This document shows positions 1,188-4,703 of a stretch of 64,000 nt of DNA, in pieces. The notes beneath the pieces were generated by a model. The model did no database searches. It saw only the letters and a list, made by a program, of their open reading frames with translations, and was not told the DNA's origin. Made by a program: the position numbers and the translations under genes. Origin of the DNA: Macrostomum lignano (lineage: Eukaryota); NCBI GenBank assembly GCA_002269645.1, contig NIVC01000181.1, positions 461,693 through 525,692 on the forward strand, in the 5' to 3' direction. Position 1 is the stretch's first letter. Each line of letters starts with the position of its first letter.

Positions 1188-1376
1188 ATGAAGTGGCAAC
1201 TCGCTCTCGGACTTTTGCTGTTCGCAGCCATGGCCGTCGCCATGCCCACCCAGGAGGAGAAGGCCCACGCCGAACGTGTGCTGGAGGAGACTCTGTCCAA
1301 CCTGGACGAGTCCAGCCTGTCGCAGGAGCAGAGCCCGAAGCTGAAGAAGAAGTTCATCCATATTCATTTCGGTTAG
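1188..1376 (+). CDS. Secreted prepropeptide 1, 62 aa: signal peptide, acidic propiece, KKK, FIHIHF-G (predicted amidated)
   Basis: ATG at 1188 in AATCATGA context. MKWQLALGLLLFAAMAVA is a hydrophobic signal ending in an AxA site, followed by a Glu-rich spacer, a basic cluster and a terminal Gly. The first 43 residues are 37/43 identical to the paralog at 4503. Confidence 0.85.
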   Translation: MKWQLALGLLLFAAMAVAMPTQEEKAHAERVLEETLSNLDESSLSQEQSPKLKKKFIHIHFG

Positions 1377-4300
1377 ATGAGCTCTCCGCTGCATCTGAGA
1401 TCGAAGTCGCTTCATGAAATATTGAGGCTGACTGACACTGACAACTGACAACTCACCTGACTCTAAACTCCGACTCTGACCATCTAGTTATTAGCTGGTA
1501 ACTGTTCCTATCTAGTGAGCAGTTTTACTAAATATAACGAAAACTCAAATTTTGTTTTAGCATCAACTACAAAAGCTTTGTCTTGCTTGCATTGGTATTT
1601 ATTCAAGTCGCCAAATCGAAAGGCAATGCGTGTCGGACTTTAAATTTATATGACAGTAGTTATCAGTGATAATTTTGTAGAGATAAATAAGTTCCATCAC
1701 CTGTTTTTGTTGAATAGTTTTCTTTATCAACTATGGTATTTTATTGGAGAAAATTTCATTTATGACATAGTTGATCAATTAGTGATCACGTTTCAGAGTT
1801 GTAACGACGCATTTTAATCGCCAAACTGTTGCAGTACAAAAGAAAAATGATTTAACTCTCATTTATTTCAAAATTATTAACTTATTTCATTTATTACCAA
1901 AGGGAACTCGTTTTGAATGCATAGCATGTGCAAAATTGCTTAAACTGGTAAATAAATGGCATATAAATTAGGCATGAACCGTTATAGGATAATGTACAGT
2001 TATTCGTAAGTGAGACTTTAGGATGATAGTCCGGCTCGCGAGTGTGCGCAGCTGCACAGGACTATTAAAGTCTCAGTAATATCCACAGATACTAAAAACA
2101 CTAGATGGGTCACTTAATGCAAATTCGCTCGATGTCTGAATAGCCTACTCTCTTCTGGGCATATGAGCGCGCAAGACTATCGATTTTTGTTTTTCCACGT
2201 CAGCGCTATGGTTTGAGCCATAGACAAAAGTGTCTAGCAACGAAATTCAGCTTACTACGAGGGAGAATCAAAAAGTAGTAGTAGGGGTTCACCATGGCTT
2301 TCCTATGAGAAATCAGAGCTAAGCAAGGAGTATATTTGTCTAACTTTTCTCCTTTGCAAGTACGCTATTTTGTTTTCCAAGTGTTGCCAAGACTAATCAG
2401 GGAGAAGCCACTTCAGAGAGAAGACGTCAATTAAGCGGCGCATCAGATTGTCCTTTCAGGAAGAGGGCGTTTGTGAAGTTACCATGAAGCTGATGAGAAA
2501 AAAGTTGCAAGACGTCTGCACAGAGCCAAATTTACCAGCCGGATCAAGCGCATCTTTTGCCGAAACCGTGCCGACGACACGCACAGATGAGGGGCTTCAA
2601 TGCAGTTTGCTTCTCCTGACACATCAATCGAAGCCATGGAATATGTTGCTGGCTACGTGTAGCAAAAAGTGGTGCACTGGATTGCCTGGATTGCAAGGAA
2701 ACTCTGACCGCTCAAATCCCATCTGGAGTTCACTTGGCCAACAAGCAGTACAGTGTTGTTCACACTGGATTGACAGCACCATCGTAAGCAGTTCTGGAAA
2801 GTTTCAGTCTTTTGGAATCTTTTTGGCTCATTACCGAAGACTAAATTGCTGCAGAATCTCGTGAGCCATTCAATATTGAGACGCTTCCGACACGCAAATG
2901 ACGTGCTCCGTGCGTCAAATTCGCTTGTCTCAGGCTGCATCACTGGTGCCGCTGTGAGGCCAAATCGCTGAAGGATAGGACAGTGCGATGCTCAGCAAGC
3001 AGAAAGATGAGTAAACCCAATTAACCTTTGTGTATTTGTAATAAACATTTAGTATCAGTATTTCGAGACAGTATTTCGTTCTGTCATTCTTCTTCAATTT
3101 GTTGATGCACATTTGCTTCTAAGTTCAACTAACTAGCTTAAACTAAAAAACTTATTTGGTTTATATAAATGCTTTTGTCGTTCCCCATTGCTATACATGT
3201 ATAATACTTATTTTTGTGAAATCATCTTTGTTTATATGAAAAGCTGATATGACCTGTGCATAAAAATACACAAGTGCTACGTGCATGCCACTATTAACAA
3301 TTTTTTACGAAGCCCACATTTTTGTTCAAAGTTTTCATTGCCCGTCCGTGTGATAGAAAAATGAGGACCTGAAATGTCATAACTTTTCAATCTGCATCAT
3401 AATAAAATTTTACTTGATGCACAATTATATCAAAAAAACTCTATACAGACGCCCAATTAAAAGTAGCTTATTCATTAAATAGGCGAGTGACCCATCTAGT
3501 GTTTTTATTATTATCTATGGTAATATCTAAATTATCGAATTTCAGTGGGACCATAGACAAACAATGCATGGAATGAAGAGAGAGGATACAGAAAAGAGAA
3601 ACATAAAGCTGGACGTGAAAAGACTTACGTGGTTTACTGGATTTTGGGCCATAGACAAAAAGTTGCAAACAGGGGATTAAGAGGGTTGGAAAAGAATGAG
3701 ATGCGGAGATTAAGAGAGAATAAAATGTGAATTGCTACATTCGTTTGACCATGGAGAACCAGCCACTTACCGTCCACTACACAAAAAAATAGTTTGTCCG
3801 TACTTTGTTTTAACGTTTACTATAATAGTCATCTATTATCCCGAGTTTGAATTCTTTATTCTATAGTCATTCCAATCTATGCATTATCCAGTGAAGTTTA
3901 TGTGAAGCAATAAATTGAATGTGCTTAAGGTTTAACCATAGACAATGCGAATGATCTTCCATTGTGGGAACTATTTCTAGAAACAAAGACAGGGTAAAGA
4001 GTAAAGGACTAAAGGCCAATCAACAACATTTTCAATCCATTTTGTTTTTCTCCGGCTTTGTAAGCTGGTGTGACTGGCAGCTACTGTTAACTTCCAATGC
4101 CAAGGTCCGTCGACGTGAATTCGACCAAAAAATCTCTAAAATTGATTCACTTTGCTAAAAATTAGTTGATTTTGGCATCTTACACAGCTAGGAGTCAAAT
4201 TGCAGCGAGTTTGATAAACGAGTACATGTACTGTGAAATATTTCTAGCGGTACTCGTTTGATTGGCAGCTGTCGTCAAACAAAGAAAGGCTGCATAGTAC

Positions 4301-4378
4301 TCTCGCAGACAAGCAAACCGTGTAGCTATGCTCATGCTCACGTAAAAGCAAAAAAGTCAAACAACGATGCTCTTTGGA

Positions 4379-4411
4379 CCGGAAACACGTGCCAATCCGT
4401 TGCGCATAAAT
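4379..4411 (+). promoter_or_regulatory. Proximal promoter of peptide gene 2 (same ETS/E-box/CCAAT/TATA-like module)
   Basis: Conserved with 1071-1103. Confidence 0.55.
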
Positions 4412-4502
4412 TGGGAACTCCCAACTGCTCAAGAACTCAACTTTAAACTCGACTCAATCTACACACAGCTCGAAGACTCGACTCGACTCGACTCAAGCAA
4501 TC

Positions 4503-4703
4503 ATGAAGTGGCAAATCGCTCTCGGACTTTTGCTGTGCGCAGCCCTGGCCGTCGCCGTGCCCAGCCAGGAGGAGAAGGCCATGGCCGAACGTGTGCTGGA
4601 GGAGACTCTGTCCAACCTGGACGAGTCCAGCGTGTCGGAGGAGAAGGCCGTCGACAACGCTAAGAAGTGGCTCAGGGTTAGGGCTAGGGTTAGGATCGGT
4701 TAA
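4503..4703 (+). CDS. Secreted prepropeptide 2, 66 aa: signal peptide, acidic propiece, KK, WLRVRARVRI-G (predicted amidated cationic peptide)
   Basis: Paralog of 1188-1376 with the same architecture and GC-rich codon usage; shared 5' leader and partial 3' UTR similarity (ATCTGAGATCGAA..TCGCTTCAT). Confidence 0.85.
   Translation: MKWQIALGLLLCAALAVAVPSQEEKAMAERVLEETLSNLDESSVSEEKAVDNAKKWLRVRARVRIG

Follow-up and report, generated by a model that had tools for sequence, protein, structure and literature searches.

Two neighbouring genes, g1 and g2, in a 64-kb stretch of Macrostomum lignano DNA (64,000 nucleotides of contig NIVC01000181.1, assembly GCA_002269645.1; hereafter, the window) belong to a superfamily of small secreted prepropeptides that is restricted to Macrostomum and organised in multigene clusters. 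As read from the sequences, the organisation is of a known kind, one conserved cassette and many active peptides, yet without homology to any described family. The unit is a single-exon coding region behind a putative compact promoter common to the genes, and its product consists of a predicted signal of 18 residues, an acidic propiece of ~34 residues, a KK or KKK site for putative processing, and one C-terminal cationic peptide with a Gly or Gly-Lys end. The two genes, their parts, and their flanks lie at the following positions of the window.

880..1187, + strand: conserved upstream block and 5′ untranslated region (UTR) of g1, defined by DNA alignment with 4200-4502; putative promoter
1078-1083, 1084-1088, and 1096-1103, + strand: g1 promoter elements CACGTG, CCAAT, and TATA-like GCATAAAT, with a leader containing (GACTC)n
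1188-1376, + strand: g1 coding sequence (CDS), 62 amino acids, from the open reading frame (ORF) listing and tblastn; identical to gene model P0014
1188-1241, 1242-1343, and 1344-1352, + strand: g1 signal, acidic propiece, and KKK
1353-1370, 1371-1373, and 1374-1376, + strand: g1 peptide FIHIHF, Gly, and stop
1377..1650, + strand: g1 3′UTR and downstream block, shared in part with g2; AAATATAAC at about 1530-1538
4200..4502, + strand: conserved upstream block and 5′UTR of g2, with CACGTG (4386-4391), CCAAT (4392-4396), and GCATAAAT (4404-4411)
4503-4703, + strand: g2 CDS, 66 amino acids, from the ORF listing and tblastn
4503-4556, 4557-4661, and 4662-4667, + strand: g2 signal, acidic propiece, and KK
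4668-4697, 4698-4700, and 4701-4703, + strand: g2 peptide WLRVRARVRI, Gly, and stop
4704..4950, + strand: g2 3′UTR and downstream block, shared in part with g1 and further paralogues

The products are MKWQLALGLLLFAAMAVAMPTQEEKAHAERVLEETLSNLDESSLSQEQSPKLKKKFIHIHFG for g1 and MKWQIALGLLLCAALAVAVPSQEEKAMAERVLEETLSNLDESSVSEEKAVDNAKKWLRVRARVRIG for g2, each closed by a stop codon. They differ at 6 positions within the first 43 residues, and reciprocal tblastn matches them with E = 8e-16 to 8e-17, far beyond chance. The product of g2 is, furthermore, 100% identical to the M. lignano proteins P0001 and P0002, which are encoded on two different contigs. The original prediction, made from the letters of the window alone, had described two intronless genes identical at 37/43 residues; its ORF positions proved exact, and the gene models of g1 and of paralogues are colinear with the genome. 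A third copy was not found by tblastn within the window, which holds only g1 and g2. DNA alignment and a conservation profile over 15 paralogous copies delimit a repeat unit of ~750 bp (roughly 880-1650 and 4200-4950) that spans ~300 bp of upstream sequence, the 5′UTR, the signal and propiece, and patches of the 3′UTR. Best conserved are the block at 4379-4411 (1071-1103 in g1) and the region of the start codon and signal peptide. Column conservation reaches 0.96 over 4379-4408, and the upstream block is the most conserved non-coding stretch, with the TATA-like GCATAAAT about 95 nt 5′ of the ATG. Conservation is low over the last 10 to 14 codons, which encode the C-terminal peptide, and recovers partially in the 3′UTR; both analyses bear out the predicted conservation of the promoter and of parts of the 3′UTR. 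Between g1 and g2 lies an element of ~1.42 kb (2089-3511) with 26-nt terminal inverted repeats (2089-2114 and 3486-3511, 96% complementary). Probably a DNA transposon of the non-autonomous kind, it stands outside the gene family and explains much of the 3.3-kb spacing of the two genes. CCATAGACAA motifs are found within this element (2218-2227) and also downstream of it (3551, 3649, and 3936).

The genes of the family are transcribed, as judged from the RNA-seq-derived annotation in which they sit: the BOX15_Mlig gene models combine a genome-guided RNA-seq assembly (StringTie/TACO/TBONE) with TransDecoder ORFs (PMC5730564). This origin accounts for the 'partial' N-terminal extensions of the models, which stem from the 5′UTR. 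In the models P0003, P0004, P0007, P0013, and P0014 (that of g1), the span of the gene matches 3 nt per residue plus the stop codon and, hence, the CDS is without an intron; the only gap is a 10-nt difference in the (GACTC)n run in the 5′UTR of g2-type models. Neither a lack of transcription nor a replacement of the C termini by splicing, both raised along with the original prediction, is therefore what we find.

The family extends far beyond the window. Enumeration of the family, as had been proposed, yielded 31 clusters at 90% identity with about 75 member sequences; it combined a profile search of 1.84 billion representative proteins with a second, word-indexed search that started from a broader alignment. 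All of them come from M. lignano with the exception of one 929-bp contig of the read set SRR31628392 (L009), which has only 75-82% DNA identity and yet has kept the ACGTG...GCATAAAT promoter layout. Bar this unassigned contig, no member outside Macrostomum was found among the 1.84 billion representative proteins, where P0021 is a weak, unexamined match (E = 4.7e-4). A Pfam scan of the g1 and g2 proteins gave no family above threshold. PF22991 ('Lock_Gag1-like') on the acidic helix, with 21.5 bits against a cut-off of 27, was taken as compositional and rejected. The claim that the family is undescribed has held up: every member is annotated as 'hypothetical/uncharacterized', and no paper in the literature searched matched the peptide strings or gene identifiers, a scope outside which the flatworm neuropeptide surveys of McVeigh et al. 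2009/2011 fall, which might list an expressed sequence tag of the family. Likewise, the Macrostomum literature on neuropeptides, prohormones, and antimicrobials contained nothing describing this gene family.

The proposal of a tandem family was correct and, indeed, understated, with five more intact copies to the left of the window. Locus L001 (contig NIVC01000619.1 of the same assembly) overlaps window positions 1-1694 with 99.9% identity and, within 20 kb to the left, carries five further intact copies and one 3′ fragment (L001 2835-2776). The order in window orientation is FVRLRVRI-G, IFRVRVRI-G, FVRVHVRF-G (on the opposite strand), a second FIHIHF-G, the WLRVRARVRI-G 3′ fragment, g1, and g2, and a duplicate region on contig NIVC01000181.1 (L002) has the same gene order. 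Eight fetched loci contain 22 intact ORFs, all of which end with Gly and stop. A second cluster of six genes (L010, NIVC01000619.1 179577-207088) is located ~80 kb downstream of the window end as placed on that contig; it comprises, on both strands, five GFHVHFH-G genes and one FHLHLP-GK gene, the peptides of which are His-only forms of the alternating pattern behind a different, Ser/Asp-rich propiece. Aberrant members also exist: a read-through variant, WLRVRARVRV-G-SRRRSRSG (L007 8913-8695, − strand), a frameshifted model that is named 'SERPIN domain-containing' in UniRef (P0012), and a model that fuses two tandem copies with a duplicated propiece over a span of 2.9 kb in L004 (P0008). Directly 3′ of the FVRVRVRL-G gene pairs, a gene for a 917-amino-acid EF-hand protein was observed in two regions (L004 15837-22935 and L008 13421-20240), pointing to conserved synteny between duplicated genome copies.

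Closer inspection of the short mature peptides of the g1/g2 subfamily revealed a strict pattern. Twelve were found, each followed by Gly: FIHIHF, FVRVHVRF, FVRLRVRI, IFRVRVRI, IFRVRVHI, IFRVHVRF, FVRVRVRL, FVRVRARIRL, FIRARVRVRL, IFRVRARIHI, WLRVRARVRI, and WLRVRARVRV. Their lengths vary by two-residue steps, and all 12 fit the formula hh(Bh)n (h, a hydrophobic residue; B, Arg or His) without a single violation and never have a Lys within the peptide. The B positions hold only Arg or His, though, of the single-nucleotide non-synonymous changes open to Arg codons, no more than about 1 in 6-7 would leave a basic residue or His in place. Furthermore, some paralogues encode Arg by AGG and others by CGT or CGC; since the codons differ and the residue is kept, the pattern is maintained at the protein level through synonymous turnover. 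The original prediction had called the C-terminal peptides unrelated, which is true of the pairwise comparison of g1 with g2 but not of the family, since the paralogue series shows homology: the intermediates FVRVHVRF, FVRVRVRL, and FVRVRARIRL connect FIHIHF with WLRVRARVRI, and FIHIHF (TTC ATC CAT ATT CAT TTC) is FVRVHVRF (TTC GTC CGT GTT CAT GTT AGG TTC) minus 6 nt and with three G>A transitions. On this codon comparison, the g1 and g2 peptides are homologous and represent the two extremes of a graded series.

The g2 peptide is encoded by telomere-like hexamers, GGGTTAGGGCTAGGGTTAGG (4674-4693), in which AGG-GTT specifies Arg-Val. Slippage of such hexamers may explain the two-residue length steps. 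The notion that (RV)n is mere telomere-like hexamer slippage or a microsatellite was rejected, because other paralogues use CGT/CGC and GTC/CTT. With its strict period-2 alternation of hydrophobic residues and Arg or His, the pattern is amphipathic only as an extended beta-strand. Consistent with this, 11 of the 12 short peptides have their largest hydrophobic moment at 180 degrees and the g1 peptide has its own at 160 degrees; values at 100 degrees are low. Pattern and hydrophobic moment thus speak for the alternating, facially amphipathic beta-strands of the original prediction, of which the low-confidence AlphaFold2 model described below gives no confirmation.

In the wider superfamily, this signal and acidic propiece recur, together with a junctional Lys that never varies, in front of very different C termini, which fall into at least 12 peptide classes. 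Beyond the g1/g2 subfamily, the short ones are GFHVHFH-G, FHLHLP-GK, and AVYKPNYYKD; others are FRIRIRWGRVARNVLRLL-GK, WLLRRIRIRWRRVLRVASRVYRIYRYLPI-GK, and WRIRFRRIRIRWRRVYRVVRTAYRIYRHLPFP-GK, the two-Cys peptide WRIKSACKIFRRLLHLARKCYAKK-G, LFFRRRRRRHYFVYHSRRRYYRRRYHRRHHVHIVAYH-G, and WFSRWFRITYRRRGGERRYLRSYFRL-G; and WRRRRRFRWRKAIRVAGKVAKAVL and the Pro/Arg repeats of L009, FLRVRLPRVRMPRVRLPRVRLPRLRVRFRWSKK, lack the Gly or Gly-Lys end. Helix-like, two-Cys, Pro/Arg-repeat, long Arg/Trp/Tyr-rich, and Arg/Tyr/His-rich types occur side by side, with net charges of up to +14 and paralogue peptides of 6 to 37 residues. The earlier description of a conserved prepro region in front of a hypervariable cationic peptide therefore applies to the superfamily with its 12 classes and not to the g1/g2 subfamily, in which the hh(Bh)n motif is conserved. 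A terminal G or GK is found in nine of the 12 classes irrespective of sequence, and the retention of this ending over otherwise unrelated sequences is the best evidence here that amidation matters.

The precursor architecture is that of the original prediction, with signal, anionic propiece, basic site, and a C-terminal peptide with Gly all present. The signal MKWQ[LI]ALGLLL...A-V-A, judged by sequence rule, is near-invariant across members, with a basic n-region followed by ~14 residues of hydrophobic core and an AXA motif. The propiece carries a net charge of −5 in g1 and −7 in g2, and the mature peptide one of 0 (g1, with two His) or +4 (g2). The superfamily alignment shows no exception to the Lys that precedes the peptide. 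Among the M. lignano loci fetched, each of the 28 intact ORFs (22 plus the 6 of the second cluster) has kept the start codon, the signal, the invariant Lys, the binary pattern, and the terminal Gly or Gly-Lys. By sequence rules, signal peptidase would cut after A-V-A, a prohormone-convertase-type enzyme would cut after the Lys run, a carboxypeptidase would trim basic residues, and the terminal Gly would be converted to a C-terminal amide, giving FIHIHF-NH2 and WLRVRARVRI-NH2 as predicted products. Most plausibly, the acidic propiece would serve to neutralise the positive charge of the peptide on its way out of the cell. Within the alternating peptides, Arg occupies P1, P3, and P5 and not the convertase-favoured positions P2, P4, and P6, which makes internal cleavage unlikely. 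A PC2 homologue, neuronal and essential, is present in M. lignano (PMC4490696).

Rates of change were estimated according to Nei-Gojobori, summed over 13 distinct paralogues and based on few sites:

Prepro region: pS (synonymous) 0.142, pN (non-synonymous) 0.116, pN/pS 0.81
Mature region: pS 0.446, pN 0.292, pN/pS 0.65

The mature end is thus ~3 times more diverged than the prepro region, at synonymous and non-synonymous sites alike. The simplest reading is that the 5′ two-thirds of the unit are homogenised by gene conversion or unequal crossing-over, and that the 3′ ends keep an older divergence under pattern constraint.

By analogy with known systems, the g1/g2-type peptides would most likely be secreted host-defence peptides (antimicrobial or membrane-active and defensive) behind a shared prepro cassette, a reading to which we give close to an even chance, though not quite that. 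The anionic propiece would, again by analogy, mask a membrane-active cationic peptide that is then released as a defensive effector; in Arg variants the positive charge would be permanent, whereas His variants such as g1 would acquire it only when the pH is acidic. The nearest parallel in organisation are the preprodermaseptins (and also cathelicidins, conotoxins, and ant aculeatoxins), in which a conserved signal and acidic propiece and a basic site precede radically differing cationic peptides, with frequent Gly-mediated amidation and clustered multigene families. Unlike preprodermaseptins, to which it has no sequence homology (Pfam, profile search), the family described here belongs to a free-living flatworm, its processing site is KK, KKK, or a single K and not KR, and no signal of positive selection was found. 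In the frog genes, moreover, signal and peptide are on separate exons, whereas the Macrostomum CDS is unspliced. A further parallel are the myticalins of mussels, along with other linear Arg/Pro/Tyr-rich antimicrobial peptides of invertebrates: the myticalins are a lophotrochozoan multigene family of linear, strongly cationic, and often amidated peptides with an anionic proregion, which in their case follows the mature peptide instead of preceding it.

A second parallel is synthetic. Designed (X1Y1X2Y2)n-NH2 peptides such as IRIKIRIK-NH2 (IK8L), and Arg-rich MAX1 derivatives (PEP8R), also have 8 to 12 residues, Val, Ile, or Phe alternating with Arg or Lys, and a C-terminal amide, and the predicted FVRVRVRL-NH2 and IFRVRVRI-NH2 would fit this design rule almost exactly. 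IRIKIRIK, a designed 8-mer that matches the short flatworm peptides in pattern and length, kills a broad range of bacteria (PMC4330034), and antibacterial hydrogels that self-assemble make use of VRVRVRVRV strands (PMC12940918). Unlike these amphiphiles, the predicted flatworm peptides open with two hydrophobic residues, use Arg or His, and never have an internal Lys. As natural peptides, the short members, with a predicted amide and with hydrophobic residues alternating with Arg or His, are out of the ordinary. A wider proposal, which we hold slightly more tentatively, is that the superfamily is the first host-defence peptide superfamily of Platyhelminthes, with one cassette and a dozen structurally different Arg-rich classes that include natural, amidated period-2 beta-strand peptides of 6 to 10 residues. 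With the same reserve, these may be regarded as natural counterparts of IRIKIRIK-NH2, with lengths in dipeptide steps and with the His variants as pH switches.

Several observations weigh against a defensive role. Positive selection is common in defence and toxin peptides, and no signal of positive or diversifying selection was detected in the mature region, at a pN/pS of 0.65 with synonymous divergence equally raised and few sites. With only six residues and a net charge of zero at neutral pH, the predicted g1 peptide, FIHIHF, makes a weak antimicrobial candidate. KK is one of the less commonly used dibasic convertase sites. The supplements of M. lignano papers gave no data on expression site, inducibility, or peptides for the gene identifiers; as their tables are incomplete or use other identifier systems, this does not speak against expression as such. 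Lastly, AlphaFold2 modelled g2, with the family alignment, entirely as helices at low confidence (predicted local distance difference test [pLDDT] of 64.6, predicted template modelling score [pTM] of 0.26); as a prediction of this quality is uninformative, it neither supports nor refutes the beta-strand.

Effectors of this type are, to our knowledge, hardly described in flatworms as a phylum, and the secreted immune or defensive molecules of free-living species are next to unexplored. If the peptides serve in defence, the family would supply this missing effector arm, would add another independent origin of one secretion cassette serving many active peptides, and would provide natural minimal alternating Arg/Val amidated beta-strand peptides of a kind that chemists have reached through design. 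If they are instead neuropeptides or reproductive allohormones, dozens of variable paralogues would be unusual for such classes. In M. lignano, which is studied by transgenesis as a model of regeneration, ageing, and host-microbe relations, the compact putative promoter (~300 bp that include CACGTG, CCAAT, and the TATA-like box) could directly serve as a cell-type-specific driver of transgenes.

It is unlikely that the genes encode precursors of neuropeptides or peptide hormones akin to I/Lamides and FVRIamides, acting on a G protein-coupled receptor or a peptide-gated DEG/ENaC channel. Several points would fit such a role: each precursor has a single short peptide with terminal Gly after a dibasic site, the PC2 homologue of M. 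lignano is neuronal and essential (PMC4490696), the window contains a DEG/ENaC (Pfam ASC) gene (51995-55188), probably by coincidence, and the predicted RVRI-, RVRL-, and ARIRL-NH2 ends of several members have the V-R-[IL]-amide of GFVRIamide and AFVRLamide, which, with the FVRIamides, are recognised neuropeptides of flatworms and nematodes and of lophotrochozoans (PMC4723143; PMC3890597). FVRVRVRL could even be read as FVRL with the VR dipeptide tripled. However, the conservation is reversed relative to neuropeptide genes, the prepro region being kept and the mature end variable, and there are dozens of paralogues with poly-Arg peptides of 6 to 37 residues in several structural classes. A short, putatively amidated V-R-(I/L) end in some members and the phylum are all that is common to the family and the I/Lamides or FVRIamides (flatworms, nematodes, annelids, molluscs), the precursors of which are multi-copy, KR-flanked, and conserved between species, whereas those of Macrostomum are single-copy, variable paralogues. 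Indeed, a real I/Lamide precursor, P0045 of Strongyloides, has three KR-flanked copies (AYVRLA-G, ALVRL-G, and AFVRL-G) instead of one copy after KK or KKK, and profile-profile comparison (hhalign) of P0045 with the family gave a probability of 0.8%. The Phe at position −4 of I/Lamides is replaced by Arg or His, g1 ends with IHF, and orthologues outside Macrostomum were not found in the profile search of the 1.84 billion representative proteins. A search with an artificial (G/A)FVR(I/L)GKR repeat returned one nematode protein only, P0045, and none from M. lignano. Membership in the I/Lamide (NPP-1) or FVRIamide families was therefore rejected, there being no (A/G)FVR(I/L)-NH2 motif, a single copy, and no precursor homology.

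M. lignano is a species with strong post-copulatory sexual selection, and it is imaginable, though likewise improbable, that the peptides are reproductive or allohormone-type secretions (prostate or seminal fluid, cement or shell gland) that are passed to the mating partner or act on it. A lineage-restricted, multi-copy, and fast-diverging family of small secreted products is typical of seminal-fluid genes, and many uncharacterised gland-specific transcripts are described for M. lignano (PMC5977470, PMC7336406). The gene identifiers were, however, not found in the supplements of the latter, which may use another identifier system, and the extreme Arg content and the conserved amidation signal are atypical of described seminal-fluid proteins.

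A structural role, with the peptides joining polyanions (mucus glycans or adhesive proteins) to build beta-sheet fibrils or coacervates of mucus, rhabdites, or temporary adhesive, has a slim chance. Alternating Val/Arg strands do underlie self-assembling hydrogel peptides such as PEP8R, VRVRVRVRV-DPPT-RVRVRVRV-NH2 (PMC12940918), the family includes members that are rich in Arg and Tyr or recall the adhesive decapeptides made of Tyr and Lys (P0043, P0020), and the duo-gland adhesive system of M. lignano is well studied (PMC6410801). Peptides of 6 to 10 residues with a charge of +3 to +4, however, should not self-assemble alone, and the helix-like, two-Cys, and Pro/Arg classes would be left unexplained. 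The characterised adhesive proteins, furthermore, are as far as is known large proteins and not peptides.

Very unlikely, finally, is that the ORFs are unprocessed or non-functional, either as secreted polypeptides of ~45 residues active as a whole or because many of the copies are duplicates in decay, the genome being neopolyploid and rich in repeats: the near-neutral prepro pN/pS of 0.81, the fragmentary (L001 2835-2776), frameshifted (P0012), and read-through (L007 8913) copies, and the highly redundant assembly would fit this, but the start, signal, Lys, binary pattern, and Gly or Gly-Lys end are kept in 28 of 28 intact ORFs, Arg is kept across differing codons, the promoter is the best-conserved non-coding stretch, and the genes are transcribed.

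The remainder of the window contains ordinary host genes, repeats, and mobile elements. A scan for promoters and terminators gave nothing above shuffled controls, its models being bacterial and not applicable to a eukaryote. Exons of the DEG/ENaC gene (Pfam ASC, amiloride-sensitive sodium channel) are located at 51995-53116 and 54538-55188 on the − strand, 47 kb from the peptide genes; some DEG/ENaC members of other lophotrochozoans are gated by amidated peptides. Exons of further host genes, a Ser/Thr protein phosphatase (Metallophos domain) and an acyltransferase-like gene, are found at 18821-19426 (+ strand) and 25590-26477 (− strand). Retroelement-like ORF remnants occupy the window start (1-400), and a non-long-terminal-repeat retrotransposon extends over 31559-34981 (+ strand), with an endonuclease ORF (31559-32131) and a 948-amino-acid ORF (32138-34981) with reverse transcriptase and RNase H. 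An inverted duplication (41437-41934, + strand, and 48896-48408, − strand) carries the same ORF of 163 to 166 amino acids (RAPSPVAGDREAGRV...) twice. A (TCTA)111 microsatellite and long CT/GA-rich low-complexity tracts are present at 11480-11925, 5880-6120, and 26997-27536. Two identical 1.9-kb minisatellite arrays (56412-58357 and 60091-62036; periods of 30, 66, and 96 nt) are offset by 3679 nt, which points to a recent segmental duplication, and the long ORFs over these arrays are repeat artefacts.

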